DNA of 64,000 bases from Macrostomum lignano (taxonomy: Eukaryota): contig NIVC01002079.1 of the NCBI GenBank assembly GCA_002269645.1, forward strand, positions 142,640 to 206,639. Reading direction: 5' to 3'. Under the pieces are notes generated by a model. The model was not told where the DNA came from. It saw only the letters and a list, made by a program, of their open reading frames with translations, and did not search any database. The first letter of the stretch is position 1. Each line of letters opens with the position of its first letter. This document shows positions 1,792 to 64,000 of this stretch, one piece after another. The position numbers and the translations under genes were made by a program.

Positions 1792-3240
1792 TCTGAACGG
1801 TTATATGATGGTTTAGATGTTGGACGGACAGAGAATATGTTTACAAAAATGAAAATACTAGTTAAGTTAATTGCTCTCGCGCGTTTGTCTAGAAATAGGA
1901 TTGAACTTAAATATTTTAAGAGTTTCTATGAGATTCTGAGTATCGAAGAGTTCTCCATATACTTAGCCAGTAAACGCTACAGCGCAATGTCTCCAAGATT
2001 CTTCAGAGGTGTTGAAGGTATGGATGAAGTGCTAAATTATCAAGAGATTAAATTAGAAACAATAAGATGCATTTTGAAAACCCATGTCGAACATTTTAAA
2101 TGGAGAATACTTCCAGCACCCGAATATCGTCATCGGTAGTCCATCAGTAGTGTGGACTATACTAATAAGCAGTCGAAACATGGTTTTGTTTAATTCTATT
2201 GATTACAAAAAGAAACTGTTCCCGTGCTATGAACTAGTAAAAATTGAATGAGTAGACAAATGCAACACAAAAATCAATTACCTTGATGGCTTTAAGACTT
2301 GAACTCCCTGGAAGAAATAAAAGGCCCATAAGTTCTAACTGATGCACGAAGCTAAGAATTAATTTTAAAAGGATATTTTATATGTACAGTGAAAATTAAG
2401 TGCAAAGAAAATTTTTCTGCTTTATTATAAAGTAGTTCTGATCATAAAACACTAGTTTTTTTACTAATAATTGGGAATAAAAATAGTTTTAACAGAAAGC
2501 TGTGTTTCACTTGTTAAACACCGTAAAATAATAGACTAAAGAATCCCAGAAGCAGTTTATGCTGTTTAAATGTGATTAAATTTGTAAAAACGAATGCTGC
2601 ATGCAAACTCTGCTAAAGTACTTTTTAGTTGTTTTATTTGTTGTTATGTCTCTAGAGTTACCTAAATGATGGAAAAAGCTTATAAGCGCGAAGTCTATTT
2701 CTGTTTTTTATTATCAACGTTTTTTATATATTTGTTTCGAAAATTGTAATTCGTAGAAATAGGCGGAATTCAATGAAGAAAAGCGCAATGTTAGCATAGC
2801 TTGATAGCTTGCCTTGCCCCTGAGTCAATTTAATATTATTTTATTTATTTACATTTGCAGGCTACTATTTAATTATTTGTAGGTCTTATTTTATGCATAA
2901 ATTAACGTAAATCATAAGCCTGGTAGTCTATTAGTTTAATATGCATCGTGATCGTGTATGACAATAATATTAGGCTACTTCTGTCACATGTGATGATCAT
3001 GTGTAGATGTGCTAATTCAATGCATTTATTTCTTTCTTATTAGGCCTAACAATAACATTGACAAAGCAAAATATGATATATATATATAAAACTTAAAAGT
3101 TGAAACATCTAGGCCTAAGGCTGAGTCTTTAGGCTAATCCTTTTTATTTTATCAATTAAGACCTATGGGCTATGACATTAACTGTCATTCAAAATTACAA
3201 AACTGAATTCATAATATTGTTATGTATATAAGTAGAAAGT

Positions 3241-3915
3241 GCTTATCCCCATAGTCCCTTGCCAATAATTCCAATTTTATCCACACAGATCCATGCCAAT
3301 AATTTCCAGCTTATCCCCACAATAGCTTATTGAAATATAGCTGCTACCATTCAAGTCTATATAGGCCATGTCAATAATTCCAAGTTTATCCACACAGATC
3401 CATGTCAATAATTTTTAGCTTATCCCCATGGCTAAGATTGTGCAGTTGTTTGTGTTTAGTTTTGTGTACTGATTTTAAAGTAATATTGTCATTATTATTA
3501 ATATTATCATTACTATTAGTATTATATTTTGAATTTTAAATTTTGCAAGTCTTGTTTGCCTCAATCTTTGGGTCGTTTGATCGTTCTAAGCAAAGCTGGC
3601 AGCTAAGCAAATATTTTAAATTAACCCTTTTAATGATGAAAAAGTTTTAACAAAGTAGTCAATATTATTTAGAATTAATTACATGTAGTTTGTAGTTTAT
3701 TTTAAAGTTTTGTAAAACAGTGAAAACAAAAAGATGGTTTTTGAACAGATTCATTTTAAGGTTCTTTATTCTAATAAGCAGCTCTACTATGGGGATAAGC
3801 TAGAAATTATCGATATGGATCTGTATGGATAAAATTGGAATTATTGACATGGCCTATAGACTTGAATAGTGGCAGTTATTTCAATAAGCTGCCATGGAGA
3901 TTAGCTGGCAATTTA
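3241..3915. repeat. Inverted repeat pair (about 130-bp arms) with an internal direct duplication
   Basis: 3301-3430 matches the reverse complement of 3788-3915. An approximately 58-bp unit occurs at 3261 and 3370. Confidence 0.75.
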
Positions 3916-6540
3916 AATTAACTTTTAATAATAAAAAAAGCAATAGTTAGTATACCATGCTATGCTATAATCATTGTACAATGATTCTCTAGGGACACTA
4001 AAACTAGATAGCTAGAAACAATGATAAAGGAGGTCCCTATCTTGTTTCTAACATTCTAGGGTCTCTGTATTGATACTAATAGAAAAGTATTAGATTAGAC
4101 TATTGACTGACAATTTGTCTTTGACTTTGGGTCATATTAGTATATCTAAGTCTTTTTGCCTCCAACAATGTCAACTAGTTTCCTTGATGTTTTCTTTACA
4201 ATTTTTTAGCATTTTTTTATACTAGTCTATCTTAACCAATCTTTGCTCATGTGATCGCAAATATAGTACTTATTGAGTATATAGATTCCAAAGACTTAGA
4301 TAGGCCCTATTGCAATCTACAACCCCAAAGATTCTAGGTCCCAGGCAGTCTAGTACTACATGCATAGCATGCATCAAGGAGTTAGAAAAGTTTTTTGGCA
4401 ATCTTTGCACAGCAATAATATGGCATATAAAAAGTAAAAAAATGCATAGCACCATAGTTAAAGCTATATAATAGCTGAACCACAGAAATTTTTAGTCCTT
4501 TTATAAAAATATATATGATACTTGTCACTTTTGAAGTGAGTATTATATATTATGGTAAGAAAAATATAGAAAAAGAAAAAAAGCAAAAAAATATATTTAG
4601 GTTGCAACAAAAGAAGCATTTCTAAAAGCATTGTATATTTGCAGTCTCAAAAAATAAAAAAATTGTTACAATGCAAAAAGGTCCTTTATTGTTGCAACAC
4701 AAAAAAGTCCTTTATTCCTTTGTTGTCACAATGCCCCAACTTGCAACCCTCATTTTAGTCCATCAATACACTTAGTGGATTTGATCCCACCCTCCCATAT
4801 ACAATGTGCAAAGCAAAAAGTTATTGTATGCACAGTGCATAGGGTTACAATTGTTATACATAGTTAATTAAGATAGAAACTCATTGGGAAAGGGTGTTGC
4901 AAGCTGAGAAAAAATTTTGCTAGTTTTAGGTTGCACTTGAAATCAGGTAGTGAATAATTATAAGAAAATTGCAATTTTTAAGCCTCATGACTTTTAGCAT
5001 AGGGTTTGTGCTAATTAGACTCTAAATTAGAGTTGGCTAAGTAGATAGCAACAAGACTTAACATGTATTTCTGATAATAATTTAGTTTATAGGTTAAAGT
5101 TGATAAACAAAAAGTTTTATTTAGATTTCTTTTCTATTCTTAAGACTTTTATGGCATTTATAAGTCGTATGCTTTGTTACCCTTTTATATTTTGATAAAT
5201 TTAGTAAATTTCATTAGACTAATCTAAATATTTGCTAGGCATATAGATATTTATAATATAGTTAGCATTTAATATGCATATAATATACTATGCATATAAG
5301 ACTTTTGGTTTATGTATTGCATAGGGATAGTTAGATTATATTTGCAATATATGAATCAATAGACCAAATTGATAGGCAGGTCTAGTGGATAAAATTGGAA
5401 AGAATCATATAATTTCAATATTAGTTTTTTATTATATATTTGCAATTGATAGATCATATTATTATCATTGTCATCAAAACTTACTGAACTAAGCAAGTTT
5501 TAAAAATTCCTATATAGTACTATGGCATTAGTAGTAATATATGAGTATATAGTTACATGCCAAAAAATCTAGGTCTGATCTTTAAATCTTCCTAGATAAA
5601 ATTAAACAAGTCTAATTATAATTATATACAAATTCAATCAAAGCTATATTGATTAGCTATATTGCTTATTTAAATATATATAACAATTTTTCTTAAATTT
5701 CAAGTCAACATATATATCTTATAATGTAATATATTTTTTCTTTTGTATAGAGTCTATATTTTTAACAATTTATGTCTTTGAGCAAGACATTTAATTATAC
5801 ATTGCTTTAGTTTATTTAGCTATAAAATAGATATTAATATTAGCTAGGATAATTGAAGATACATGTGGTAACCCCCTAGTCCTTGGACTAAATAGCCATA
5901 TATAGGTTTTAGATACACTATAATAATTGCAGCAATGCTATCAGTTGCATATCTAGTCATTAGGATAGTTATAATCAATTAATTTTTCCATTCTTTGTTT
6001 TTTCTTCTTTTATTCATTTTTATATTTCTGTCCTCTGCAACCACTTAATTTTTTATGCTCTTCTAAGTTAATTGCAAACAATAAAAATAGATTGTTTGTC
6101 TATAATGACTTTTCTCTCATGACAATCTAATATTGAGTATAAAAGTTCAAGGATTAGAATCCTAAATGAATAGTAGCAATTAAAATTAATGCATTTAAAA
6201 AGATTGTACATTGCAACTTTTGAGTATTCAAAGTCTATTAGATAAAAGTAGACTATAGGCACACAATGGACACATTGATTTTAACCTTTTTTCATTAGGG
6301 TTAATCCCTACTTATAGCAATAATTTACATTGCTATAAGCAATAACTTTGCAAATGGGAAAATTTCTGCTTAGTTGCAAGGATGTTGATCAAATGATATG
6401 CTTTAATATATAACTATAATCTTGACCTTTTTAATAAAAAATGTAATGTTTAATAAATTTTGAAAAATCAGAACTACTACTAGTATAGGAAAATGAAACA
6501 TTGTGAATCAAGTGAGAGCATGTAGTGTTAGCATACATGC

Positions 6541-6692
6541 GCAACCTTGGGAATCACTCAGTCATTTCTATTGGCAACACACACATGTAAGTTGCTATTG
6601 GCTGAGAGCAGTCACGTGACTACTATTCCATCCAATAGCAACTTACATGTGTGTGTTGCCAATAGAAATGGCCAGGTGAATCCCTAGGTTGC
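6541..6692. repeat. 152-bp palindrome/hairpin
   Basis: 61-bp arms with a perfect 39-bp stem (6563-6601 / 6632-6670). The loop contains AGTCACGTGACT. Confidence 0.9.
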
Positions 6693-7261
6693 GCCCAAGC
6701 ATGAGTGTTAGAGTTTAAGCATTTGATAATTTAAAATTTATACAAAAAAGACAATCATTACATTTATGAATAATATAAGCAAAACAAATCTGAATTGAGT
6801 GTGGCACCATTATAGTTAAAATTAAATATTGCCCTAATTTGAGTTTCTTTTAAGCCCACCTTTAGCCATTAATAATACTATAGTTAAAGTATGGAATTCT
6901 ACAGTTTTAAATCTAATTTCTAACCTATATATAAAAGGTAGGTTTCATATAAAGATTCTCTTTTATCTATGCTATGCCAAGCTTGGCAGTGGATAAAAAC
7001 TATCAGAGCTAGTTGAATAAATAAATGTTGCTTTTTACGCTCATACTACTGAACAGAGAGTAGTTTTGTTATAAATATAGTTAAGTGAACCATTCAGCGT
7101 ACTTTGTATCTGTGCCAGTAACCAGTGGCTTGATGAAATTGCCCCCGCTCCCAGTTGGTACTTGCTAGCTAATTGTTTCGTCTATGGGCAGAAGTGCAAG
7201 TTATCTCTAAAGCCAACTATGCAATGCTTATTTATCTATCTGAGCCCGTGTCAATCTTCAG

Positions 7262-7556
7262 TCTGATGCTATCTCCGTTCAGCGGCGTCAGTCCGCACTT
7301 GTGGAAGACGATAACCGGACAGAAGCCGATTCCGGGTGTCCGAAAGCGGACGACCCAGTGTCCGAGACTGTCCGAGCTGACTCGGAGGAGTCGTGTTTAG
7401 TTGAAGGCGAAGAACTATCTAGCGAGTCGAGACAGCAGCAGTTTGCTAATCCACTGTTCGATTCGGATAGCGAGGGCGAAGATTCCGGCGGATTGGACGA
7501 GTTCGACGAGGAGATTCGAGCTGCTGTTGCTGCCGCCGCTGATCAGCCTGCTGAAG
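7262..7556 (+). CDS. Probable internal exon of an unidentified gene (acidic, SDAISVQRRQ...LFDSDSEGED...DQPAE)
   Basis: GC-rich open frame after acceptor atcttcag|, strong donor GAAG|GTGAGC at 7557, followed by a minisatellite-filled intron like other genes here. The upstream exon was not found and no family was recognised. Confidence 0.5.
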
Positions 7557-7559
7557 GTG

Positions 7560-8779
7560 AGCTGTCCTAATCCCATGGGGTGGGGGCTGAAAGTGATCTG
7601 TCTTTTTTAATCCCATGGGGTGGCTGTCCTAATCCCATGAGTGGCTGTCCTAATCCCATGGGGTGGCTGTCCTAATCCCATGGGGTGGGGGCTGAAAGTG
7701 ATCTGTCTTTTTTAATCCCATGGGGTGGCTGTCCTAATCCCATGAGTGGCTGTCCTAATCCCATGGGGTGGCTGTCCTAATCCCATGGGGTGGGGGCTGA
7801 AAGTGATCTGTCTTTTTTAATCCCATGGGGTGGCTGTCCTAATCCCATGGGGTAGGGGCTGAAAGTGATCTGTCTTTTTTAATCCCATGGGGTGGCTGTC
7901 CTAATCCAATCGGATGGCTGCCTTAATCCAATCGGATGGCTGTCTTAATCCCATAGGGTGGCTGTCTTAATCCAATCGGATGGCTGTCTTAATCCCATAG
8001 GGTGGCTGTCTTAATCCCATAGGGTGGCTGTCTTAATCCCATAGGGTGGCTGTCTTAATCCCATCGGGTGGCTGTCTTAATCCCATGGGGTGGCTGTCTT
8101 AATCCCATGGGGTGGCTGTCTTAATCCCATGGGGGTGGCTGTCTTAATCCCATAGGGTGGCTGTCTTAATCCCATGGGGGTGGCTGTCTTAATCCCATCG
8201 GGTGGCTGTCTTAATCCCATGGGGTGGCTGTCTTAATCCCATGGGGTGGCTGTCTTAATCCCATGGGGGTGGCTGTCTTAATCCCATAGGGTGGCTGTCT
8301 TAATCCCATAGGGTGGCTGTCTTAATCCCATAGGGTGGCTGTCTTAATCCCATAGGGTGGCTGTCTTAATCCCATCGGGTGGCTGTCTTAATCCCATGGG
8401 GTGGCTTTCTTAATCCCATGGGGTGGCTGTCTTAATCCCATGGGGGTGGCTGTCTTAATCCCATGGGGGTGGCTGTCTTAATCCCATAGGGTGGCTGTCT
8501 TAATCCCATGGGGGTGGCTGTCTTAATCCCATCGGGTGGCTGTCTTAATCCCATGGGGTGGCTGTCTTAATCCCATGGGGTGGCTGTCTTAATCCCATGG
8601 GGGTGGCTGTCTTAATCCCATAGGGTGGCTGTCTTAATCCCATAGGGTGGCTGTCTTAATCCCATCGGGTGGCTGTCTTAATCCCATGAGGGTGGCTGTC
8701 TTAATCCCACGGGGGTGGCTGTTTTGATCCCATAGGATGGCTGTCTTAATCCCACGGGGTGGCTGTTTTGATCCCATGG
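7560..8779. repeat. Intronic 22/23-bp minisatellite (TAATCCCATGGGGTGGCTGTCT)
   Basis: About 50 units; the first part is a 105-bp higher-order repeat. Confidence 0.95.
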
Positions 8780-8801
8780 AGAGCAGCTTGTGTGTGCTCA
8801 G

Positions 8802-8971
8802 CAGTCAGCGGAATGGGCAGAATCGCTTCAGCGCTGGTCGTGAGGAATGTCGCCAAAGGCGTTGCGCCAGGGTGCGCGCAGCCTTCCCCCGAATATTTAA
8901 TATTTGACTCCCACAATTCCAAGTGTCGCAAGTTCAAATCCCTGTATTACCTGAACTCGTACTGTCTATAA
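8802..8971 (+). CDS. Possible terminal exon of the same unidentified gene
   Basis: A cluster of acceptors (ctcag|cag|tcag|) follows the minisatellite. Phase-compatible frames end at 8971, or at about 8843 if the third AG is used. Ambiguous. Confidence 0.3.
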
Positions 8972-9170
8972 TTTAGATTGCAATCCACCATCAAGTCTGC
9001 CCGGAGAATCGGACCCAGCTTTCGATAGCAAAGTTGTTAGTACCAAGCACGCAGACGCTCCAGCGGCCTCCGTTGCCTGCACTCAATACAGAGTGGATTC
9101 GGGAGCAGTGGACCAGGCGGCGGTGGATCGCAGCGGTTCGCCGCTGTACCGCCACCCGAATCACCGGGAG

Positions 9171-9365
9171 ATGCTGTCGGCCATAGAGCTTGAGCTGGCT
9201 AACAATGACGAGCGAAACCTATGGCAGGACGCTTATAGACGATTGAGCCTGGCCTCGGGTTCGGACGGAGCTTCGTCTGCTCCGCTGAGCACGGCGGCTG
9301 CCAGGCATCCGGATAATCGGCTGCTCAACCGGTACCGCGACGTGCTGCCCTACGACCATAGCCGG
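9171..9365 (+). CDS. PTPN1: Non-receptor protein tyrosine phosphatase PTP1B/TC-PTP-like, exon 1
   Basis: MLSAIELEL...WQDAY aligns to the PTP1B N-terminus; pTyr-recognition loop NRYRDVLPYDHSR. Donor CGG|GTAAAA, phase 0. ATG at 9171 is preferred over the GTG start in the ORF track. Confidence 0.9.
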
Positions 9366-9469
9366 GTAAAACTGGCTTCAATATATTCTTGAATGCTGGC
9401 AATGATCTTGAATCCCCAGAATTGACTGCTTATGAATTAGATAATTTGATCAATCCTGACTGATCCCCG

Positions 9470-10050
9470 ACTTCCATAAGTCCCCAAATTATTTCCAAAT
9501 CCCATAATTCCCCAACAAGAACAGAACAACATAAATCCCCAAATTAATCCCAAATCCCATAAATCCCCGACAACAACAGAACAACATAAATCCCCAAATT
9601 ATTCCCAAATCCCATAAATCCCCAAATGATCCCTAAATCCCATTAATCCCCGAATGACCCCCAAATCCCATTAATCCCCAAATCCCCCAAATCCTCAAAT
9701 GACCCCCAAATTTCATAAATCCCCAAATGATCCTCGGATCCCATCTACCAAAAGAGCTTCACATTCATAATCCCTAAATAATACCCACATCATCTAATCT
9801 CCCAAATGATTCCAATTCCAGAATCCCCCAAATTATCCCAATTTCATAATCCCCCAAATTATCTCAAATACCATAGTCTCCCAAATTTTCTAAATTATCC
9901 ACAAATCCGATAATCCCCAAATGATCCCCACATCCGATTATCCCCGCATCCCATGATTTCCTAAATGATCCCTAAATCCCATAATCTCACAAATTATCCA
10001 AAAATCCCATCATTTCCCTAATGATCTCCAAAATCTATAATGTCCTAAAT
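9470..10050. repeat. Degenerate AAATCCC/CCCCAAAT-rich repeat in the PTP intron
   Basis: Recurrent aaatcccataaatcccc-like units; G nearly absent on the + strand. Confidence 0.8.
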
Positions 10051-10066
10051 GATATTTACTCTGTAG

Positions 10067-11248
10067 GTGCGGCTCTCCCCGATCAGCCGGTCGCACGCCA
10101 GCAGCCTGGGCCTGAGCGGGGATTACATCAATGCCAGCATAGTTCGAGCCGAGCACGCCGGCCGGGTGTTCGCCATGGCCCAGGGCCCTCTGCCGGCCAC
10201 GGTCGGCCACTTCTGGCTGATGGTGTGGCAGCTGCGCAGTCGCGGAGTCGTCATGCTCAATCGAGTATTTGAAAAAGGCGCCCTCAAATGTCATCCGTAT
10301 TTTCCGGACGAGCGAACGAAACGAGTCGATTGTCCGGACGTTGGCCTGCGAGTCGAGCTGGTCTCTTCCGAATCATTAGGCTATTACATTGTTCGCGGCT
10401 TCCGGTTGTCGTTGCTAAGCAATAAAACCAGCGATCCGGAGCCGGCGTCCGCAGTTCGAGACCTGCTGCACTATCAGTACTTGACTTGGCCGGATTTCGG
10501 GGTGCCGCAGACTCCGGGCGCTTTCCTGAACTTCCTGATGGCTGTCCGCCGTTCGGGCCTCCTGTCTGACCCGGACAGGCCGCCGGTTGTCCACTGCTCG
10601 GCCGGGATTGGCCGGACAGGCAGCCTGGCCGTCATAGACGTCTGCCTGGCTTTGATCGCCCGTCGTGGCAGCCTCTACGGAGTTGACCTGCCCGGCGAGA
10701 TCCGGCGCCTCCGCCGCGACCGCATGGGCCTGGTGCAGACGCCGGACCAGCTGCGGTTCTGCTACCAGGCCGTTGTCATGGGCGGCCGGGCGATACTGGC
10801 TAACGGAGTCGATCGGGCCGACAGTTTGTCGTTTAGCATCGACGAGGCCGACAGGCGACAATTCGGCATGGCTAATAACAGCTTCGCCGAGGCCGGCGAC
10901 TCTGATGACGAATCTTCTTCTAGTAGCAGCGGCGGCAGCAATCATTCTTCAGCAATAAACGATAACGCTTATAGTCTGTTGCGGGGTAACCTGGACAGGC
11001 AGAGGACCACCTGGCTGAGCTGCCAGCACAGGCTTAGCGGCGGTGGCGGCGGCGGCGTTCCATTTCCGCTGTACAATGAGGAAGACGAAGCTGCCGACGA
11101 CAAGAGGGCAGCAGCTGCGGGCGTCGATGCTGCTGAAGCCGCCTTCAAGCCGATTCCAACGCCTGTCGTTCGTCTGCGCGACCTGGCCTGGATCTCGCTG
11201 CTGACTGCCCTGGGCGCCTACCTGGTTTATCAGATGGGAGCAGCTTGA
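10067..11248 (+). CDS. PTPN1: PTP1B/TC-PTP-like, exon 2 (catalytic domain plus C-terminal membrane anchor); protein about 458 aa
   Basis: Acceptor ctctgtag|. Motifs DYINAS, QGPL, WPDFGVP (WPD loop), VHCSAGIGRTG (active site) and QTPDQLRF (Q loop). Hydrophobic tail WISLLTALGAYLVY resembles PTP1B LTAGAYLCY. Confidence 0.95.
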   Translation: MRLSPISRSHASSLGLSGDYINASIVRAEHAGRVFAMAQGPLPATVGHFWLMVWQLRSRGVVMLNRVFEKGALKCHPYFPDERTKRVDCPDVGLRVELVSSESLGYYIVRGFRLSLLSNKTSDPEPASAVRDLLHYQYLTWPDFGVPQTPGAFLNFLMAVRRSGLLSDPDRPPVVHCSAGIGRTGSLAVIDVCLALIARRGSLYGVDLPGEIRRLRRDRMGLVQTPDQLRFCYQAVVMGGRAILANGVDRADSLSFSIDEADRRQFGMANNSFAEAGDSDDESSSSSSGGSNHSSAINDNAYSLLRGNLDRQRTTWLSCQHRLSGGGGGGVPFPLYNEEDEAADDKRAAAAGVDAAEAAFKPIPTPVVRLRDLAWISLLTALGAYLVYQMGAA

Positions 11249-23448: not shown

Positions 23449-23741
<293 letters not shown>

Positions 23742-35954: not shown

Positions 35955-36836
<882 letters not shown>

Positions 36837-39767: not shown

Positions 39768-40238
<471 letters not shown>

Positions 40239-40308
40239 TAGAAACGTTGGAGACAGCTGGTGTCTTTTGAGTATCCGTGGTGTCCGAATCTCCCGTTGCG
40301 ACCCCTTG

Positions 40309-40560
40309 ACTTGACTTAGCTGCAGGGGGCTCCGTGCGTCCGGAAACAGCGAGGAGGCGTTGCCGCCCATTTCGCTAGCCCCTGGCGACCACGGGCAGCT
40401 GGGGCTCCATAAGTCGCTGAAAGGCGAGTGGGGGCTAAAGGTGAGAAGCAGCTGGGCTGGAACCCCAAACCCAACAGCCAGGCCAAGAGGTAGCGACCGG
40501 GGGTGGCTTAAGCCCTTACCGGCCCGACCGCTAGCAACTGAGACACTCCCCGGCTAAGAG
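40309..40560 (-). mobile_element. Probable 3' fragment of a non-LTR retroelement with an (AAGTC)n-like tail
   Basis: The minus strand ends GCAGCTAAGTCAAGTCAAG. Its terminal 79 bp recur at 61456-61534. The far boundary is uncertain. Confidence 0.45.
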
Positions 40561-40602
40561 CCCGGCTTGAAAAAACCAGAGGCCGAACCAAAGGTCCATC
40601 AG

Positions 40603-40968
40603 AAGGGGCCGTAGCCCAGCGGTCTAGCGCAGGCTCTGGTGTGCCAGCGACCCAGGCTCGATTCCAAGTGCAGTCACATTAATTTGGGGCTGAATTGGAA
40701 TCTCGGCTTGGCTCTGCTCGTGCAATTAACGGCCTTGAGAGCCACCCCCCAAGGCGCAGTGAAGTGTACATGCCTAACGATAATATAAAGTTAGGGCCGC
40801 TGTACACTCCTCCTGTGTGAGTGTGTGCCTGCGTACGTATCCGCGCGCTTGTGTGCCTGCTCAGGGGAGTCGGCGGAATGGGCACTAATGCCTCTCGCCG
40901 GTTGTGTGCCTATGTCGCTTAAAGTGCGCCAGGGTGCACACAACCCCCCTGCCTCTAATAAAAAAATA
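40603..40968 (+). mobile_element. Full-length tRNA-derived SINE (family A)
   Basis: A box TAGCCCAGCGG, B box GGCTCGATTCC and an A-rich tail. 13-bp TSD AAAGGTCCATCAG at 40590-40602 and 40969-40981. Confidence 0.85.
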
Positions 40969-41412
40969 AAAGGTCCATCAGCGCGGTGCTACACTGGGCC
41001 CTTGAAGGAAGCAGGAGGACTGCCTCCGGAGCCTGCGGACTAGCCGCATACCCAAAACGGTAGAGACAGAAGCCAAGGCCACGGATGGGTTGCCGCCGCC
41101 GGAGCCCAGTCAGTCCAGCAGCCCTAGAGCTGCCTTGAGCACATGCGGGGCGTGAACCCCTGGGTCTGCTTGTGAGTCAGCTTGGAGAGAGTTCTCCTGC
41201 CATTCCTGCACCAGAATAGAGGGGGTGCAGGTGTGTAGGATCGCAGACCTTAGCTCGTACCAGTAAGCCTGGTCTGCCTCATGCTACACAGGCGTGCTGA
41301 ACTCACCATTGCATGTCGATGCGGCCCCTGGTTTGATTGCGTGTGCGGCCAGGTGGGTTGCCGTGCGGGTCAGCCTCAGGGAGTGTACCTGCCTGATGAT
41401 GCCTGGTTTGTA

Positions 41413-41670
41413 GGTAGCCTAGTGGTCAGAGCGTCGGCTTCACGACTCAAAGGTCGGGAGTTCGATTCTCGACCGAACTCGTAACAATTTGTGTCCTTGA
41501 GCAAGACACTTAACTCTGCGTTCAGTTCACCCAGCTGTAAAATGGGTGCCAGCATTAGCTGGGGCAATTGAGGGTGTGTGAGGACCCCCAGTCCTTGGAC
41601 TGAACAGCCGTGCGCAGCCTTCAGATGCGCCGCGCAATAGCTGCGGCTGAGCTGTCGGTTGCACATCTGC
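41413..41670 (+). mobile_element. tRNA-derived CORE-like SINE (family B, copy 1)
   Basis: Head GGTAGCCTAGTGG...GAGTTCGATTCT, followed by GTGTCCTTGAGCAAGACACTTAAC...CTGTAAAATGGG, which closely resembles the MIR CORE domain. Confidence 0.8.
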
Positions 41671-42529
41671 CTATTAGGGCCAATACTGTACACGGGCACA
41701 GCACTCGTACACACACACACACGCTCACACAGGGTGTACAGCAGCCCTGACTTTCTAATCGTCCGGCATGTACACTGTCTGTGCCTGGGGCTTTGGCATC
41801 GGTGCTTTAAAATTTTCTTTGAGTTGATTGATTTGTGCGCAAACCAAAAAATGCACTCAACTCAGAGCCAAAAATATGTAGAGCTCTGATGAAGGCCTCA
41901 CTGCTGCCCGCTACGGCTGATGAAAACCTCAGATTGCTGCTTTTTTGTCTTCAATTTCAACTGCAGAGCCCTGCGAGCGCTAGGGATGGCCTATGGGGAG
42001 ATTTATCCCTCGCTGCCCATAATGGACTGTAATGAGCATAACAGGATCTCCCTGATTGCGTGACGGCAGAAAGGAGACGACGGCGGGAGAAGGGACGGCC
42101 AGACTTCAGCAGTCGCCTAATCGAGGTTTTAGAAGAGATGGGAGATAGCCAGGCTCAGGGGGGGGGTCAATTAATTTGCTCGCCTGGGATCAGGCGGGGA
42201 AGGGAGAATAGCGGCCGGGGGTAACCGGAGGAGGGAGGCAGGGGAAGCCAGAGCAGTCCGAGAAGCTAAACTGGGAGAAAAATCCTCATTTCAAACGAAC
42301 ACTGGCCGTGTTTTATTTCGCCGCTTTTCTGAACGACAAAGAGAAAGGCGCGTTAAATTTTAAATCTTTGCCGCGGCACGGGAATTCCAGGGACTCGGCC
42401 GGTGCCTTGAAAAAAAGGGATCTTATTGGGATGACGAAAGCGTTATTGATTGTGAGATGGGACGAGTCAGGTGGTCGTTGCAGTAAGAAAATTGGCTTTT
42501 ATTGCATCCGAGGGTACAGATAAAAGCCC

Positions 42530-46620: not shown

Positions 46621-47308
46621 GTTATCTGCGACGAAGGCTGCGAGCAACCGGCGGGGGCACATCGCTCGGCCGGGCCCTGCTCGGCCGGCTGAGGAAGCAG
46701 AGATCCGCCGGCGACATCGAGCAGCAGCAACAGCAAAAGCAGAAGCAGCAACAGCAACAGCAGCCGCAAGAGTCCCCATCGCCGTCACCGGGACCTCATC
46801 ATCAGCAGCAGCAGCAGCTGGACAAGCAAAAGCAGATCCGGCGTCGATTCCTCGGCCATCGATCCAGCTCAGTCCGCTCGGCCATCAGCGAACGAGCCTC
46901 CCCGGCGTCCGGGGCGTCGGTGTCGGCAGCCGGTAGCGGCGAGCTCAGAGCAGGCGAAGACGCAGAGTATGAGGAGCCCCTGGACCCGTCCGTGACTGAG
47001 GTGTTCTGCGGCGAGTGGAAGCAGGACCGGCGCTGCGGCCTGGGAGTCGCGGAGCGCAGCGACGGATTGAAATACGAAGGCGAATGGGAGGGCAACCGTC
47101 GCCATGGTTACGGGGCCACCACATTTCCGGACGGCAGCTGCGAGGCCGGAAAGTACAGGGGAAACTTGTTGAACGTGTCAACCGCCCGCCGAGGCCGGTT
47201 GTTCCTGTTGAAGAGCTCCCGGCTGAGGGAGAGAGTTGACACGGCGGTCAGGGAGGCTCGAGTGGCGATGGCCGAGGCTCTGAAACGGGCTGAGAATGCG
47301 CAGAGCAG
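46621..47308 (+). CDS. JPH: Junctophilin, exon 3 (joining region, MORN 7-8, start of alpha-helix)
   Basis: Acceptor taatcggcag|. GRLRKQRSAGDIE...RSSSVRSAIS...EVFCGEWKQDRRCGLGVAERSDGLKYEGEW. Donor AG|GTGAGT. Confidence 0.92.
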
Positions 47309-48233
47309 GTGAGTGTTTGGGGAACAGAGGCAACCGAGGCTGTGGGATAGCACTGAGGATGCAGTTCTGACTGGGATTTTGTAACTCGTTCTGGCATCAG
47401 TGGCGTAGCCGGGATCTCAGGCACGTCTTTGGAGGCGAAATGCATTTGGGGGAGGGGCTGAATCAGCAATCACATTGCCTAACTTATTGCCGGCAGTAGC
47501 TGGACCGCAAATATTTTTATGAGAATTTTTATGCGCCACTTCTAATCCCTATTCTAATCTCTGGGCGCGCGAGAGGGCAAGCTGAGATGAAAATCTGCTG
47601 GGCTGCTAAGGCTGGCAGCCGGGAGGAATCAATTTCGCTCATGCTGACTGTTCAAAAATATCCCTAAAAGACCGAATTCCCTTCTCCCCAAAAGAGTGAG
47701 ACGGTGCTAGTCAACGAGTGGAATAACGGGAGCAAGCAGTGGAGCAAATAATCAAAGTGCGCCCGGAGCCTCGAGCTTAAAAGATGGAACGCGGATATAT
47801 CAAGATGGAGAGAGTGAGAGAGTCTGGCCGAATCGGGAAAGGGGTTATTGGTAGTTTTTTTCAGGAATTTCCGATCTCTAGATTGCCGCGGCCTGAGTAG
47901 AAAAAGTCAGCCTAATGAGCTGGCTCTCTGTTCTTTTTCTCTTCCCTGCCTTTCTGAGGCCCTGCGGCGCTCTAGCACCCCCCCCCCCCCAATTCCCTCA
48001 GCCTGGCACCCTTACGCCGTGCTTGAATCTAATTGCATCAAGTGCATCTGTCTTGCCAGCTGCCTGTTAGGCTGTTTAGGCAGTTCGGCCGCCCACGCAG
48101 TGTTTAAGCTTGTTTTTGCCGAGTTCCCAGCTTTTCTTCATTCCGTTTTTTTTTTCTAGGAAAGCCTCTCCCGGCTTTGCTTAAAGTCTTAAACGCTCCG
48201 AACTGAACTTGAAATGAAATAAACAAATTGCAG

Positions 48234-49597: not shown

Positions 49598-50134
49598 GTG
49601 AGAACGATTGAAAAAGTTGGAATTGATTTTGTACTTTTTTTGCTTCCGTTTCCAAGCCCGCTTTCTTTGTCTTTTTGAAAATTAAAAAAAGGGTCTAACT
49701 TTTATGTTTGCTGTAAGGCGGAAGTTAGAGTCGTATGTTTGATTCGTATGAGCAGCCCCTCGGTACAGGAAAAATGAATCGGTATAAATATTTTTCCACC
49801 GAAGAAAATAAACAAAAAATTTATCGCCTATACTGTAAGGCCTAAAACTGTCAACTTAGTCGTAAAAGTGCAAAAATTGGCATATACGCTCGTAGCTACA
49901 AATTCATGGAAGCAGGGAATAAATGAAAGAGCTGCGAGTGCGTGCCGCCGACCACCAAAAACGTCTTGATTTAAGGAGCATTCTGACTGCAGAATTTTAA
50001 AGCCAGTGGGGTTTCGGTACTTCTTTAGCTTAGCCGCTATTTTGTCTGTAATTATTTCCGGCTGTCTCTGTCAATGGAAAGATTTATTATTTTTTTGGAG
50101 GGACTTTGAAATTGTTGAGTATCTTTCAGGCTCC

Positions 50135-50460
50135 CTGCTAACCCTTAACCCCCGCTACCCTTAACCCCCGCTACCCCTAACCCCCACTAACCCCTAACTC
50201 CCGCTAACCCCTAACTCCCGCTACCCTTAACCCCCGCTACCCCTAACCCCTAACCCCTAACCCCTGCTACTCCTAACCCCCGCTACCCTTAACCCCCGCT
50301 ACCCCTAACCCCCGCTAACCCCTAACTCCCGCTACCCCTATCTCCCGCTACCCCTAACCCCCGCTAACCCCTAACTCCCGCTACCCCTAACCCCTGCTAC
50401 TCCTAAACCCCGCTAACCCCCGCTACCCCTAAACCCCGCTACCCCTAACCCCTGCTTACC
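50135..50460. repeat. Degenerate telomere-like (CCCTAA-derived) repeat, JPH intron 5
   Basis: CCCTAACCCC(CG)CTA units. Confidence 0.85.
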
Positions 50461-50710
50461 CCAAAGTATTGCCATTCGAAATTTCTAACAGTAAAATTTT
50501 GTGCTACAGCCCCAAACATATGACTGCTTCCCTCAACACTGGTCAAACGCTAAGAGTCAAATACGAGTATCAGCATTTGAAAGAAGAAAGGTAAGGCAGT
50601 CGAATCGGTGTTATGCTGTGTCTAAAGATGACCAAGGCTACCGGGATATGCCAGAATTTTTCATCATGTTGTCAACTAATGCAGAATATTAGCTGGTGTT
50701 TAGTATGCTC

Positions 50711-50975
50711 GTAGCCTAGTGGTTAGAGCGTCGGACTCACGGCTGAAAGGTCGGGGGTTCGATTCTCGACCTACTCGGAACAATAGGTGTCCTTGAGCAA
50801 GTAAAATGGGTGCCAGCATTAGCTGGGGTAATTGAGGGTGTGTGTGGCGACCCCCCAGTCCTTGGACTGAACAGCCGTACGCAGCCTTCAGATGCGCCGC
50901 GCAATAGCTGCGTCTGAGCTGTTGGTATTAGATCTGCGCATTAGGGCAGGTGTAATAAATTATTATTGTTATTAT
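50711..50975 (+). mobile_element. CORE-like SINE (family B, copy 2) with a 32-bp deletion in the CORE domain and a (TAT)n tail
   Basis: Colinear with 41413-41670 except that GCAAG joins directly to TAAAATGGG. Confidence 0.8.
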
Positions 50976-57870: not shown

Positions 57871-58559
57871 TGACCCGCACCAGTAGACTGCACCCGGAGA
57901 AGAAACTGTCTGTCCTTGGCTACGCGGACGACCTCGCCCTGCTGTCTTCGACGGCCGAAGGCGCCCAACGGCTGCTGGACGGCTTGACTGCGGCGGCGGC
58001 AAGGCCTGGGCTGCCTTCCGATCTGTGCGGGCGGTGCTGCTCTCCGAGGCCCTGTCCGACGGCGCCAGGTCCCAGCTGTTCCAGGCAGTTGTTGAGACCG
58101 CCCTGCTGCACAATGCTGAGACCTGGACGCTGACCGGGGCGCTTGAGGCGCAGCTCGACGCGGCACATGCGGCCCTAGTCCGCGCCGCTTTCGGCGCCCG
58201 CCGCGGCCCTGGCAGCGAGACAACCAAGTCCCTGTACAAGCGCACAGGCCTGACGCGGCCTTCTGCCCTGCTGAGTCAGCGGCGCCTGCGGCTGGCCGGA
58301 CATGTCATCCGGGCCGAAGCTTACTGCCCAGAGCCGCTGCAGGACGTCCTGTTGTGGACACCGCAGGGACCGCGCAGGCGTGGCCAGGGACGATCAGCCC
58401 GCTACGTCGACCGCCTTTTTGAAGATGCGCGAGCACCCAGCCAGGCGGCCGGTGTGAAGCACTTTAGAGACCTAGCTCTGAAACGCGCGATTTGACGCTC
58501 CCCCTTTTGGCCACTTCTGTGGCTGGCGTGGGGCGTAACTATTATTATTATTATTATTA
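57871..58559 (+). mobile_element. 5'-truncated, internally deleted RTE-like LINE
   Basis: RT motif LGYADDLALL, then GKAWAAFRSV...LLHNAETWTLT...RLRLAGHVIR in a second frame, and an (ATT)n tail. 15-bp TSD TTAAGGCTTAACTAT at 57856-57870 and 58560-58574. Confidence 0.9.
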
Positions 58560-59820
58560 TTAAGGCTTAACTATGCCAGAGTATGCTAAATACAATGGCA
58601 ATAAGTTAAGTAGTATAACGAATCAATTTTTTCCTGATGCGAATCAGGAATATTGATTATCCTACACGAATTCTGTATCCTACACGAATGTTTTAATTCT
58701 ATGTGGTACCTAGCAAAAAAGCTAGTCAGCTAGAAGTATCGAATAAAATTATAATCTCAAAAATTCTGCAACGAAATTGTCACAATATCAGGGGCGTATC
58801 TAGGGGGGGATACGGGGATATATCCCCCCATTTTTATGATTTATAGGAAACAAAAATGAGTTTTTTTGGAAAAAAATGTAATATGCAGCAGCATAGACGT
58901 AGAAAAATTGCCAAGATCGGCCTATTTTACCAGTAGTTACTATTAAAATGTTTTAAATGATTATCTCAGCGAATCTCTAGTTCCAAAAATGTCGTACTAT
59001 GTCGTAAAATGTCGACAATATACTATAAATCTAAATCTGCTTTATGCGTAAATGTTTTGGTGTAATGGATTAAATGTCAATATTTCACCGGATAACAATA
59101 CAAGTAAAACTTGACATTATTCTCTGAAAGTTAAGAGAGAAATAACTGCTTACAATAGCTTTCTTATGACAGATTGTATTTGTTTTTTTAACAACATAAA
59201 ATTTTACAAAATTTCAAATAATCGACGACGACTATTTAATATTTATTGAATCTAACTAACGGATGCATGAAATTCTGAATTCATCCATGCCCTAATGATG
59301 AGATGAAAGGAGGAGCTTACATATATTTATCTTTGCTGCTGCATTGAATCGATTTTTTATTTTTTAGCTCGATGCGTTATAACTATAACAAGGCCGACTT
59401 CCAATTCCTAGAATATTCTGTATTTTTTACTCTTAGTTGTAGTTTGTAATAATTTAGTTCGTAGGCTCTCAACCAGCATAATAAGCATAATTATAAATCC
59501 ATTGGCAGAAAATTAGAATTTAGAATTACAAGCCAGTTACAAGACTCCTAAGTTTGGGCCTCGGCCTAGACAAAAAATATACTGCAAAATCATTTTTGCC
59601 ATTATTGACTTTTACAAAGTGGGTTGACCATTCACAGTCTAGTCTATACAATATAGAACACATCTCCCACTAGAGACAGCATTGCCAATGGCTATGTCAA
59701 TGAAGTCTTTATAGTACCAGCAGCCATGTCATTAATAGACTCCTATTAAAAAGTTTACACTTAAACATGGAGGGTAGCTCTGTGTCCCTAATATAGAATC
59801 TATTTAACATTAGAGATAGG

Positions 59821-60218
59821 TAGAGGTCGGACAGGATTGAAATCTTCGGGCGGGATCGGGATCGGGAATAATTTTTTTCTCGGGATCGGGATCAGGATCG
59901 GGATTCGGGAATCGGGATCAGGTCTTTTAGTGTATTGTCCATGTAAAGTTAAACAAAATTGAGAAAGATTGTCAAGATCAAGAAGTAAAACACAATGAAA
60001 TTGATATGAAGTTTTGTAACCAACAAAGTAAATAATGTAACGAGTACAAGTTAAAGCAAAATACCTTCAAGTAATCACTAATTCTATAAATTATTAATCG
60101 AAAGACCTGTTCCCGAATCTCGAGTTTTTTAGGGTCGGGATTCTGGTCCCGCGGGAATTCAATTTTCCTCGGGTTCCCGAGATTTCGGGATCAGGATCGG
60201 GATCCCGTCCGACCTCTA
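59821..60218. mobile_element. Non-autonomous hAT-type DNA transposon (MITE 1, 398 bp)
   Basis: 17-bp TIR TAGAGGTCGGAC(A/G)GGAT (16/17 match); 8-bp TSD GAGATAGG; subterminal CGGGAT repeats. Confidence 0.88.
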
Positions 60219-60549
60219 GAGATAGGGTCTCAACAGCATAAATATAATTCTCATTTCTCACAAAAATATTTAGTGTTCCGCCATAAGGAGGGTCCATGTA
60301 CTGTAGCTGTAGCCATAAGCAAAACTATGGGTTATTCCAATTCTCCATATTCCATAGCCGTAGGGACTAGGGATCCCATTATTACTTTGATAATATAGTT
60401 TACTAAAGTATCTTTGTTTTACTCTACCTGTTTCTAATAGGGGGGGGCTATTTTTTTCAATTTTTTAAAATAATAACTATAGCTATGGGAATCTATAGAA
60501 TGTGGTAGCAACTATCATATTTCTATATAGCCATAAGAGTAGGCCTAGC

Positions 60550-61053
60550 CCACACTCCAGATCATGAAGTATACACCCAAAAATTAAGGCGTGCATTGGC
60601 CTTGCATGCCAAAATTAGGCGTGCACAGTTGGCATGCATCACTCCTGAGAAAAAAGTATGCGTGCCCACCTGGCGTACACTTTATAGAATCATGCGTAAG
60701 AGTTATTGTAAAGTAGAAAAAAGATGAAAAAAAGTTCATTTTTAGGCATAAATTTCAAGCTTTCCGGTTTTTTCCAGCTCGTAAAAGAGTATTTAAACAA
60801 ATCTTTGCGTGTATAAACTTTCCACTGTAAATAGTATCGCCCAAAAAGCCTTAAAAGCAACAAAATTATCTAATAATAAGGGTCTATTATGCAATTGAAA
60901 AAAGGTCTTTTATTGTCACAACATAAAAAAGGTCATTTATCGTCGCAACACTGGCATATTTTTGAGAATAGGCATGCACTAATTTTTTTCGGCGTGCATT
61001 TGTAATTATTCAATTTTTGTTCAGGCGTGCACCCAGCATGATCCAGACTATGG
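60550..61053. mobile_element. Non-autonomous hAT-type DNA transposon (MITE 2, 504 bp)
   Basis: Imperfect 17-bp TIR (CCACACTCCAGATCATG versus CCATAGTCTGGATCATG, 13/17); 8-bp TSD GGCCTAGC at 60542-60549 and 61054-61061. Confidence 0.7.
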
Positions 61054-62799
61054 GGCCTAGCTAGCTAACATAGGCATATCTATAGCTAACATAGGCACCT
61101 ATTTTATCATATTTGCCATAAGATTCCATAGCCAAAGCTATGGCTATGGTGGAATACTATCTTAATTAATCTTTTAATTTTTGAATTTAGTCTAGATATA
61201 GGCCTATTTGTAATTTTAACAAAATTGAAATTTAATATAGAAGTGTTTATTTTGTCAATAAGTTTATTTTATTGTTCCTATTTAGAAAACAACTTTTATA
61301 GGACCTACTATGTTAAATTATGTCTATTTTAAAAAGATTAAAAGAACAAAGGCATATGTAAAAAGCAAAAGTTTTGAAAAAATTGTAGTCTCTTATTACA
61401 AATTTTGCCTATTTATAACAATATTAGTGATGTAATAGTAGTAGTATACCTATTTACTTGACTTAGCTGCAAGGGGTTCCATGTGTCTAGAAACAGCAAA
61501 GAGGCATTGCCACCTATTTTGCTAACCTCTTGCAAATAATAGTGGTATAATGCTAAGCAAATGCTTCCTTGGCAGATAGCAAATAAAGTTAGCAATCAAA
61601 ACTTAGTCAGATAAAATCAATATAAACAATAGATTAGCTAGTTAGATTGATTCTATTAAATTATACCTTATTTATTTGGTTGACAGTAGATCACACTGAA
61701 AGGCACTAGCAAAATAAAGCTAAGAACAAAGGCATGCTATTGGCAGTGACTTACAATGGAAGGAAAATTGGATAAATAAACAAAACATGCATTGCATGAA
61801 AGGCAAGGGAGTAAAAAGAAATAAGCATATAAGAAGCAAATTTAAAACCCTATTAGGGAACATACTATGGGTAATATAGGATAACAAACTTTCATAATTA
61901 TTATTATATTGATTACAATTATTTAATTCTAGAAAGGAAATATACCAAAATTTGGCCAACATTAGCAATGTTATCTTATATCTAAAGCTGAGTGGATCAA
62001 TCAATCGACTGGCTGGGTTTTACGCATATCTCCTCCTAAATGGCTGGCAACTCAAATGCAGGACTTATATATATCAATGTAAAATTTTCCTACGCAACAA
62101 ATAGGCTATTTTAATGTTGAAGTTTTCAAAATTAAGTCTATTAAAAAAGCAGAAAACTGTTTTCTTAACCTTCTTTGGCCACTTTTTCTGCTCTGAACTG
62201 AAAATTTGCATCAGTTTTGAGTGACTGCGCCACAACTTTTTCCTATCTCGGCAGTGTATTTTCTCTCCAGTGGGGGGATGGGGGCATTCTAAGTGGCTGC
62301 GTGTATATACTTGGACCCTTGCTAACTGGCGGGCAGTGAAATTCAATGCATAAACTTGCAAGCCTCTCACTGTAGTAGGCAGTGAATGTATGTCACACAT
62401 ATTCAATGCTTTAAACTGGGAAATTTCAAACGCAAACTGTTCCTCAAGTTTTGAACTTTGAAAGAAGAGACTTATATTGCTGGAAAGATCTTTCAATGCT
62501 GATATAAGTTGTTTGCTTTAAGTATGAAAACTAAAAGCACAGTATTCAAAAAACAATTTCCATACTTTTAACTTTCTGCAAATATTGTACTCATTTTTGC
62601 GAGATGCAATAGATAAATTTGGGGCTTCAACTTCTAACTATATTATCAGCGCCTTTCAACAGGCAGTACTTTGCAGCTCTAACCCTAACCCTAACCATTG
62701 AATCCTTTTCTTTGCATATATTTAAGCCAGACAATTAGAAAGCGTTTTTAATACACTCCAATTTAACAGAGTCTGTTGATTAAATTGATGGATTTTTGC

Positions 62800-63160
62800 T
62801 TGAAGGAGATAATATTGATAGATATTCGTTTAACAGAGTGAATTTTGATGAATATCGGTTTCACAGAGAGGATTTTAGTGGATTTGAGTTTCACGGAGAG
62901 GATTTTGATGGAGTTCTGTTTCACAGAGAGGATTTTGATAGATTTCTGTTTCATGGAGGGAATTTTGATGGATTTAAGTTTCACGGAGAGGATTTTGATG
63001 GAGTTCTGTTTCACAGAGGGAATTTTGATAGATTTCTGTTTCACGGAGAGGATTTTAATGGAGTTCTATTTCATGGAGAGGATTTTGATAGAGTTCTGTT
63101 TCACGGAGGGAATTTTGATGGATTTCTGTTTCACAGAGAGGATTTTGATGGATTTTAGAG
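62800..63160. repeat. 30-bp minisatellite
   Basis: Unit GATTTTGATGGAGTTCTGTTTCACAGAGAG, about 12 copies. Confidence 0.92.
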
Positions 63161-64000
63161 AGGACTTGGATGATGGGATTTGGGTCATAGGATTTAGCTG
63201 ATGAATTCTGGTGATGGGAGTTCTTCCCCTTTCTCCTCCAACAGAGGAGTTGGCCTCGTATCCTTATATATTTTAAGCCTAAAACTAACTTTTTGGCTTT
63301 ATTGCAAATTCAAAGGTTTTTAGGTTTTGGCTATTTTATCTATATTAGATTTATTATAAAAAGCTAAAAAAAGCATATTGGACTATAGATATTGGTTAAA
63401 TAAAAAAGTTATCTAGATGGGTCTTAATTTTGCACATTTAATTATTTTCTTAAAATTTTTTACTTCAAATTGATATACAATGATATAGCTTGAAAGATTT
63501 GTCTCTGGTATAAAGTATAACTATTAGTTAGATAGGTAGACTTATTCAGTGGTCAATCAATATAGGATAGATATAGTAGACTTATTAACTCAAGCATTTA
63601 TAACTCAATTATCTTAGTGCAATACTAAAACCATGGGTGGCTACCTATTTGCTGCTACACTTATAACCATTGTTTATTGTTGATTTTTTATCTGTAAGAC
63701 TATCCATTCACCAAGTTTCACTAGTTGGCAGTTTTTAATTTATTACCAATCTGTCCATTGAATCTATTATGGTATTTATCATTAAACTAAATAGAAACTA
63801 CAATTCCTAAAGAAAATAGTTAAACATAGGCCTATGATAGGCACTAAAAAGTATTAATTGTTTTATTACGAGTATATCAGAAAAAGTATATATGATAGTT
63901 CAAAGGCAAAAACAAAACCTTATTGGAATTTTTATTAAAAATCATAAATGCATGCTAGGTGCTTTTAGAAAACCTGCAGACACACTTTAGACCCCTAGAA

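Follow-up and report, generated by a model that had tools for sequence, protein, structure and literature searches.

Cytosine methylation is known to erode CpG dinucleotides in animals, both in the bulk DNA of vertebrates and in 'mosaic' invertebrates, where the affected compartment is formed by gene bodies. The mammalian DNMT3 enzymes also methylate cytosines outside CpG, near methylated CpGs, with DNMT3B preferring CAG and DNMT3A preferring CAC (PMC5595995, PMC7736785), and CpG decay has been reported to be faster in GC-poor DNA (PMC3169530, PMC5054122). One-way C>T and G>A change is likewise produced by fungal repeat-induced point mutation (RIP), as seen in Neurospora and in the AT-rich RIP isochores of Leptosphaeria/Plenodomus, and by the editing of retroelements by APOBEC3/AID. 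The flatworm Macrostomum lignano retains DNMT1 and DNMT3, and its overall level of 5-methylcytosine (5mC) is low, with a genomic pattern stated to be unknown (PMC11292947, PMC9246332, PMC10658182). Here we analysed a 64-kb window of this genome, the terminal 64 kb of contig NIVC01002079.1 (assembly GCA_002269645.1, Mlig_3_7), in which short AT-rich domains are essentially free of CpG and depleted of CAG, and in which an 88-bp interspersed element and a short interspersed element (SINE) each occur both as GC-rich copies outside these domains and as a decayed copy within one. The loss of cytosine is directional, restricted to the domains, specific for CG and CAG with an asymmetry between CAG and its complement CTG, and independent of repetition.

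Most kilobase bins of the window have a CpG observed/expected ratio (o/e) of ~0.8-1 at a background GC content of ~0.48, and its gene bodies have CpG o/e values of 0.7-1.2. Against this background three segments of complex sequence, to which no strand is assigned, are essentially CpG-free and AT-rich (GC 0.26-0.30). Domain A (2954..7038) is a 4.1-kb intergenic segment which ends ~220 bp upstream of a PTP1B-like tyrosine phosphatase (PTP) gene and contains 8 CpGs where 83 are expected, with a GC content of 0.29 and a CAG/TAG ratio of 0.22. Domain B (61027..62006; 980 bp, GC 0.30) has no CpG against 21.4 expected, a CAG o/e of 0.66 and a TAG o/e of 1.78, and segment B2 (63258..63869) has no CpG against 10.3 expected and a CAG/TAG ratio of 0.15. 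Both lie near the end of the contig, which is also the end of the window. AT-richness alone is not the cause of the CpG loss, because adjacent stretches of similar GC content (2000-2953 and 59000-61026) retain CpG o/e values of 0.81-0.84. All three segments are poor in CAG (o/e 0.66-0.81) and rich in TAG (o/e 1.46-1.79), so that CAG/TAG falls to 0.15-0.22, compared with 0.44-1.27 in AT-rich CpG-normal controls and 1.43 in the whole window. GpC is over-represented in the domains (o/e 1.76-2.0, the lower value being that of domain A) because AGCT cores survive. The other long CpG-free gaps in the window are just tandem arrays with a CpG-less unit.

Paralogous regions were obtained from two further contigs, NIVC01000647.1 (L003, L004) and NIVC01000975.1 (L002, L006), hereafter 647 and 975, using a member of the EF-hand cluster, a 95-aa open reading frame (ORF) and a member of the carbonyl-reductase cluster as handles. 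Domain A is present in both contigs with its two borders conserved within tens of bases, and all three contigs share the CpGs immediately outside its left border. Domain A is therefore a real, old and sharply delimited feature, whose copies have diverged by 2-4% per branch and have acquired their own indels.

The 88-bp element links domain B to the first intron of a junctophilin gene. The original prediction, made on the letters of the window, compared a copy at 61456-61534 with another at 40309-40387 and described their differences as one-way cytosine hypermutation, caused by a position-dependent process. Re-alignment confirmed that these 79 bp can be aligned gap-free, with mismatches at 16 positions. 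Read from the 40-kb to the 61-kb copy, the mismatches comprise 9 G>A, 6 C>T and 1 G>T, and neither T>C nor A>G occurs. None of the 8 CpGs of the 40-kb copy survives, one CCGG having become CTAG through mutation of both strands, and 6 further transitions affect non-CpG cytosines (4 CpT, 1 CpA and 1 CpC). The surroundings of the two copies were also described correctly, since the mutated copy lies within the 980 bp of domain B, where the absence of CpG is highly significant (0 versus 21 expected, Poisson P = 5e-10), and the intact copy lies in junctophilin intron 1, starting 86 bp past the MORN exon at 39831-40215. The match is not due to chance (in-window blastn of 61448-61533 against 40301-40386, E = 2e-16), and a transition-tolerant alignment lengthens the pair to 88 bp, namely 40301..40388 for the intact copy (GC 0.65, 8 CpG, CpG o/e 0.87) and 61448..61535 for the mutated copy (GC 0.43, 0 CpG), neither of which is assigned a strand. 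Over this full length 16 of the 19 changes are C>T or G>A and 3 are transversions, the 61-kb copy having lost all of its CpGs and 7 of 41 non-CpG G/C positions. No third copy was found in the window or in the fetched paralogous loci by blastn or seed search, so the probable polarity of this two-copy pair is judged from the CpG>TpG/CpA pattern and by analogy with the SINE. A purine/pyrimidine-collapsed seed search of the CpG-free segments against the window, together with sensitive blastn, returned only the 88-bp pair, the SINE, a 27-bp unit and repeats internal to the domains.

The SINE provides a second and better resolved case. Two GC-rich copies on the forward strand, c41 (41397..41680, in junctophilin intron 1) and c50 (50694..50967), are 90% identical in their core and carry 16 CpGs each. 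They have the RNA polymerase III promoter of a tRNA-derived SINE, that is, an A box (TRGCNNAGTGG) and a B box (GGTTCGANNCC) at tRNA-like spacing: the A-box match TAGCCTAGTGG occurs only twice in the window, at 41415 and 50712, and 44 bp downstream of each A box lies RGTTCGATTCT (B-like boxes at 41459 and 50756), which departs from the B box at one position in c50 and at two in c41. ARAGORN and Rfam, run on the window and on 40200-41800, returned no tRNA call and no matches; the body of the SINE presumably resembles the CORE/MIR core. The third copy, c5 (5754..5990, forward strand), is 5'-truncated and lies inside domain A, where it has been heavily mutated from C to T (GC 0.27, 0 CpG).

In a three-way alignment of these copies the c5 branch accumulated 48 changes, 41 of which are C>T or G>A, whereas the spectrum is balanced on the c41 and c50 branches, which accumulated 11 and 9 changes (C>T/G>A in 4/20, compared with 41/48 in c5, P = 5e-7). 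Conversion in c5 reached 54/107 of the G/C sites of the SINE, or about half. When the c5 orthologue from contig 647 was added, 35 of the 38 changes on the stem shared by the two orthologues were C>T-type and 3 were transversions, while their terminal branches together held 4 C>T-type changes, 5 transversions and 2 AT>GC transitions, with G/C lost and gained at a ratio of 8:2. Distinct variants in 22 tandem arrays of the window gave a baseline of 86 GC>AT transitions, 59 AT>GC transitions and 113 transversions, from which the copies in the CpG-free domains (70 vs 16) clearly depart (P = 6e-15). Directional, position-dependent loss of cytosine was thus borne out by an independent element in another CpG-free domain, spectra outside the domains being balanced. 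The original prediction had named two findings that would speak against it, a family consensus resembling the AT-rich copy and a spectrum that is the same everywhere and scales only with age. Neither was found: the SINE consensus is GC-rich, with A and B boxes common to two independent insertions, and the C>T-dominated spectrum is not seen outside the domains.

The identity of the 3' neighbour influenced which cytosines of the SINE were converted. CpG was changed at 13/18 sites, leaving none, and CpA at 22/32, compared with 9/28 for CpT and 7/24 for CpC; A/T sites had changed by transition at only 3/131. The effect on CpA resolves to CAG, which became TAG at 14/15 sites, while the complementary CTG cytosine was changed at 2-3/15 of the same sites, CAGCTG becoming TAGCTA, for example. 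For the SINE and the 88-bp element taken together, CAG was changed at 14/19 sites and other non-CpG cytosines at 31/103 (P = 5e-4), and CAG also differed from CTG (P = 8e-4). Changes in domain A which arose after the paralogues diverged show the same specificity, with CAG affected at 10/27 sites and other non-CpG cytosines at 54/559 (P = 2e-4), a difference between CAG and CTG (P = 0.02) and no elevation of CAC (5/44). Preference for CAG with sparing of the complementary CTG cytosine is the footprint expected of a DNMT3-type enzyme, and a CpG o/e far under 1 within one compartment only, together with polarised CG>TG/CA change, is that expected of 5mC deamination. Outside the domain (7039-22984) the corresponding counts were 11/643 for CpG, 3/217 for CAG and 17/1601 for other cytosines, so that neither CpG nor CAG is hypermutable there. 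A rule for the 5' neighbour (GpC protected, YpC favoured) was detected in the three-way data (P = 0.005) and was absent from the SINE. As a separate observation, the strand affected at the CpG sites of c5 and the 88-bp element varied with the flanking base: the cytosines of CGC/CGG were converted at 16/19 sites and those of CGA/CGT at 2/10.

We compared rates inside and outside domain A in the alignment of the three contigs, which covers ~2,000 columns inside the domain and 5,037 columns outside. Inside there were 65 GC>AT transitions, 28 AT>GC transitions and 47 transversions, and outside 31, 13 and 45, respectively. Per site, C>T was raised 8.7-fold in the domain, T>C 3.8-fold and transversions 2.6-fold, and C>T at cytosines that are in neither CpG nor CAG was also raised, ~9-fold. 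C>T changes make up 65/140 of those in the domain, compared with 23% expected from the outside per-site rates (P = 7e-10).

Judging from these sequence patterns, the sharply bounded intergenic AT-rich domains (~1-4 kb) are probably places where CG and CAG are methylated in the germ line and the resulting 5mC is then deaminated. The germline cytosines of the domains would be densely 5-methylated in these two contexts, now or formerly, and deamination would turn CG into TG/CA and CAG into TAG. GC-rich elements that land in a domain would then decay in one direction towards the local composition, as the 88-bp element (61.4 kb) and the SINE (5.75 kb) would have done, and copies outside the domains would retain their cytosines. 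It is 5mC that is pointed to, because CG hypermutability exists inside the domain only. A DNMT3 homologue may be the writer of this 5mC, given that the CAG flank matches a DNMT3-type preference by analogy with the mammalian enzymes, and the domain itself may be marked by chromatin or by small RNAs/piRNAs. The additional general rise in rate within the domain could reflect a lack of constraint, together with easier deamination in easily melted AT-rich DNA. The original prediction had offered three mechanisms, dense methylation followed by deamination, a RIP-like DNMT pathway and a deaminase. The first of these fits best, in view of the CG and CAG targets and the strand asymmetry; a strand-coordinated deaminase does not fit, as C>T and G>A follow each other in random order.

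The process so proposed would work like methylation-driven CpG decay, which it resembles in its compartment-limited CpG o/e of 0-0.1, in the CG>TG/CA changes and in the presence of DNMT1 and DNMT3 in the species according to the literature. It departs from that process as described elsewhere in that the compartment consists of short intergenic AT-rich islands, not gene bodies, and in that CAG is co-depleted with strand asymmetry and roughly half of all G/C is removed. The choice of the CAG and not the CTG cytosine, alongside CG, is shared with non-CpG methylation by DNMT3 in mammals (mCAG by DNMT3B in embryonic stem cells, mCAC by DNMT3A in neurons), although here it is known from an evolutionary mutational footprint alone, and in a flatworm. 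In a literature search of incomplete coverage, neither domains of this type nor a CAG>TAG footprint turned up for M. lignano or any other animal, and no animal with a documented CAG>TAG decay footprint is known to us.

Several points weigh against germline methylation of the domains as a full account. The presence of 5mC at the domain coordinates is deduced from mutational patterns, and these come from one 64-kb window and two paralogous contigs. 5mC has been reported to be low in adult M. lignano, although a low bulk level would be expected if the methylated compartment were already stripped of most targets. In domain A the rates of transversions and of change at other non-CpG cytosines are raised as well, and methylation is therefore not the whole story. 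The 61-kb copy of the 88-bp element shows CAG>TAG at 0/4 sites, and only domain B as a whole has the CAG/TAG footprint; this copy is either at an earlier stage of decay or differs in pattern. Lastly, C>T prevails much more strongly on the old shared stem of the c5 orthologues (35/38) than on their recent terminal branches (4/11). For c5 this contrast could mean a past burst instead of a steady process, on a transversion clock of 3 versus 5 events.

A more far-reaching version of the same idea, which we regard as doubtful but worth stating, is that M. lignano may defend its genome by mutagenesis targeted to domains, acting either through dense CG and CAG methylation of marked islands or through direct action of a DNMT or a deaminase on cytosine. 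Within a short evolutionary time, an inserted element would in this case be stripped of all its CG and CAG sites and of roughly half its G/C. Such a defence might, with equal reservation, be regarded as the functional counterpart of fungal RIP in an animal, with location or small RNAs as its trigger in place of duplication. Room for a burst of this kind is left by the C>T bias, which weighs far more heavily on the old stem than on the recent branches.

The comparison with RIP itself, which the original prediction had drawn, holds in some respects. The domains resemble RIP in their one-way C>T/G>A change, which makes up almost all changes (16/19 in the 88-bp element, 41/48 on the c5 branch and 35/38 on the stem), in their AT-rich blocks and in the inactivation of mobile elements. 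The dinucleotide measures are mixed: CpA is the favoured non-CpG dinucleotide in the SINE (22/32) but not in the 88-bp element (1/9), and the preference resolves to CAG, while TpA is raised (RIP index TpA/ApT 0.99-1.17 in the domains, threshold > 0.89) and the composite RIP index, (CpA+TpG)/(ApC+GpT), is 1.42-1.48 in domains A and B (threshold < 1.03). The domains differ from RIP in that CpG is the prime target and strand coordination is absent. Above all, they are not triggered by duplication. Tandem arrays amount to 18.4 kb, or 28.7% of the window, and are not affected by the decay; those whose units contain CpG keep it, as at 31337-33867 and 37486-38675 (1.2-2.5 kb, both with o/e 1.24). Repetition is not the trigger, because these arrays and the GC-rich SINE copies, with their 16 CpGs each, retain their CpGs, while domain A, little of which recurs in the window, is CpG-free throughout. 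The view that the process is RIP-like in the defining sense is therefore not supported, and repeats are not singled out: any sequence lying in the domains is affected, including non-repeat DNA, and the domains are not to be filed as RIP, because duplication dependence fails. To our knowledge no sexual dikaryon or RID-type enzyme exists in animals.

The order of changes along the elements bears on how many events were involved. Along both elements C>T and G>A succeed one another in no regular order (runs tests, 10 runs versus 8.9 expected in the 88-bp element and 29 versus 27.9 in the SINE, as for random interleaving), which implies that numerous independent events hit both strands of duplex DNA and excludes single-strand cDNA editing and processes of few strand-coordinated events. 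APOBEC3/AID editing of retroelements is similar in its clustering of C>T/G>A within a retroposon copy. In contrast to what is seen here, however, cDNA editing gives one type of change along an element and does not extend to the surrounding non-repeat DNA, and the 5' TC/CC preference of APOBEC/AID is absent from the SINE, the weak YpC excess being confined to the three-way data.

These results limit how far one can argue for an enzyme-catalysed burst of hypermutation that struck newly inserted or duplicated domain DNA and then stopped, whether by DNMT-driven deamination like that of RIP or of methylation induced premeiotically (MIP), or by an AID/APOBEC-like deaminase. We consider such a burst unlikely. 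The extent of conversion in the SINE and the ratio of C>T-type changes to transversions, 35 to 3 on the c5 stem and 4 to 5 on the terminal branches, would suit it, suggesting a much higher early rate, although this clock rests on 3 versus 5 events. The TpA/ApT values would suit it too, as would the preference for CpA over other non-CpG cytosines, which is shared with Neurospora RIP (22/32 versus 16/52, P = 0.001), although the CAG-specific, CTG-sparing form of that preference is the substrate choice of DNMT3. Repetition is, however, not sensed, CpG-bearing arrays and both c41 and c50 being intact while apparently unique sequence in the domains is equally CpG-free; the strand coordination and composite index of RIP are lacking; and C>T at CAG goes on after the paralogues split.

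It is still less likely that no targeting is involved and that the domains are simply old, unconstrained, non-recombining DNA which has reached an AT-rich equilibrium under a universal GC>AT bias, with GC-rich DNA being young or kept so by biased gene conversion. GC>AT transitions do exceed AT>GC transitions outside the domains too (31:13), domain A is more diverged between paralogues in every class of change, including the 2.6-fold rise in transversions, and contigs 2079 and 647 hardly differ in the PTP gene, a sign that genic DNA may have been homogenised. Nevertheless, a generic bias would not remove CpG specifically, whereas neighbours of equal GC content keep o/e values of 0.81-0.84, with CpGs conserved in three paralogues up to a sharp border. 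The same bias would not predict the excess share of C>T in domain A, or the mutation of CAG at a rate 4-fold above other non-CpG contexts inside the domain only.

Very improbably, the AT-rich copies could be ancestral, the GC-rich copies having gained G/C through, for example, GC-biased gene conversion. The formal polarity of the 88-bp pair, with its two copies, leaves space for this; for the SINE it is excluded, as c41 and c50, independent insertions 9 kb apart, share their G/C states and their A/B boxes. The terminal branches of the c5 orthologues, polarised by c41/c50, lose G/C 8:2, and there is no known mechanism that makes 8 or 9 CpGs through specific T>C and A>G changes. An artefact of assembly or sequencing, such as the inclusion of bisulfite-converted reads, was raised in view of the likeness to C>T conversion and of the position of domain B against the contig end, but it found no support and is hardly credible, since C>T gives way to G>A and back within tens of bases, an alternation that converted reads could not produce, many cytosines remain, and domain A is found in three separate contigs with conserved borders, divergence and indels of its own in each.

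If germline methylation of the domains is the correct reading, the islands predict where the low-level 5mC of M. lignano is placed, in short intergenic AT-rich domains and not in gene bodies, and also its sequence specificity, CG and CAG. They would represent the trace left in evolution by non-CpG methylation in the germ line of an invertebrate and a non-canonical, repeat- or heterochromatin-directed pattern of methylation in a spiralian. Methylation alone would be able to erase inserted mobile elements by mutation, a RIP-like outcome without RIP. In practical terms, repeat annotation and the divergence-based dating of transposable elements will be badly biased inside such domains of the M. 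lignano genome.

The content of the domains offers few clues to their origin. Six-frame translations contain ~117 stop codons per frame, the random expectation for their composition, and no coding remnant was identified in them; terminal inverted repeats bounding the domains were looked for and none was found. Domain A contains foldbacks resembling miniature inverted-repeat transposable elements at 3257-3913 and 6539-6694, one with arms of ~70 nt that are 87-93% complementary and the other with 66-nt arms and a 24-nt loop; differences between arms are mostly transitions (19 versus 5 transversions, over two overlapping alignments). The 26-27-bp unit occurs twice each at 4662-4716 and 60898-60950. 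The unit at 60925-60950, just outside domain B, retains two CpGs (ATCGTCGC), which are replaced by TG or CA in the neighbouring unit of 60898-60950 and in both domain A units. Between domain B and segment B2, at 62007-63257, CpG is only partly depleted (o/e 0.37-0.47), and a 30-bp tandem array at 62785-63155 keeps the single CpG of its unit in 6 of ~12 units, the others having CA. This stretch may be an intermediate stage of decay.

Two further observations concern domain A in the paralogous contigs. The PTP region (7001-12000), including its intronic minisatellites, is nearly identical between contigs 2079 and 647, with 3 differences in 5 kb, whereas domain A upstream of it differs by 3.5-9% between the same contigs, the switch occurring at ~7000; divergence on the branch of contig 975 is ~1.5% over the PTP region. 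This suggests either recent gene conversion or recombination with a tract ending at the domain border, or mosaic coalescence in a neopolyploid genome. An 843-bp AT-rich CpG-free segment that holds c5 (5286-6128) is present in contigs 2079 and 647 and absent from 975 (L006 2636-2641). Dating the insertion of c5 by this absence was tried and rejected, as there is no clear target-site duplication, the segment exceeds the SINE and a deletion in 975 is equally likely.

The window contains several recognisable genes. The PTP gene (7262..11248, forward strand), which flanks domain A, served as a CpG-normal control (CpG o/e 0.75). Two tandem carbonyl-reductase genes occupy 15039-16355 and 17534-19051; the public annotation merges them (15036-19051) into one gene of 284 aa, made of exon 1 of the first and exon 2 of the second, and several models are marked as 5' partial and start one codon ahead of the ATG. 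An EF-hand protein is encoded at 20400-21005 and occurs on NIVC01002079.1, and a PHD-finger gene and a ZMYND8-like gene are also recognisable. The first coding exon of the junctophilin gene (39831..40215, forward strand), which encodes MORN repeats and has its GT donor at 40216, shares 72-75% identity with junctophilins of molluscs and vertebrates, and another junctophilin MORN exon lies near 46920-47312. A protein search with exon 1 confirmed the identity of the gene, with no M. lignano protein among the matches. No protein record was found on look-up for a 142-aa ORF, the 378-aa ZMYND8-like ORF and ten more ORFs (39-62 kb). The ORF at 58025-58495 resembles the C-terminal part of the reverse transcriptase of a non-LTR retrotransposon (long interspersed element); a search with this fragment returned no annotated M. 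lignano protein, its only relatives being short environmental metagenome contigs with up to 76% identity, two of which have a Pfam RVT_1 match.

Simple repeats are abundant throughout. Minisatellite arrays with units of 14-45 bp, which account for the tandem fraction of the window given above, are found in nearly every intron and intergenic spacer, for example at 7607-8779, 13468-14837, 21520-22770, 31337-33867, 37486-38675 and 42527-43607. Long (GTTA)n and (TATC)n microsatellites are located at 23449-23742 and 35957-36837. Finally, the segment at 50133-50462 consists of a 16-bp tandem unit, ACCCCTAACCCCCGCT, which contains a telomere-like CCCTAA motif and is internal to the contig.

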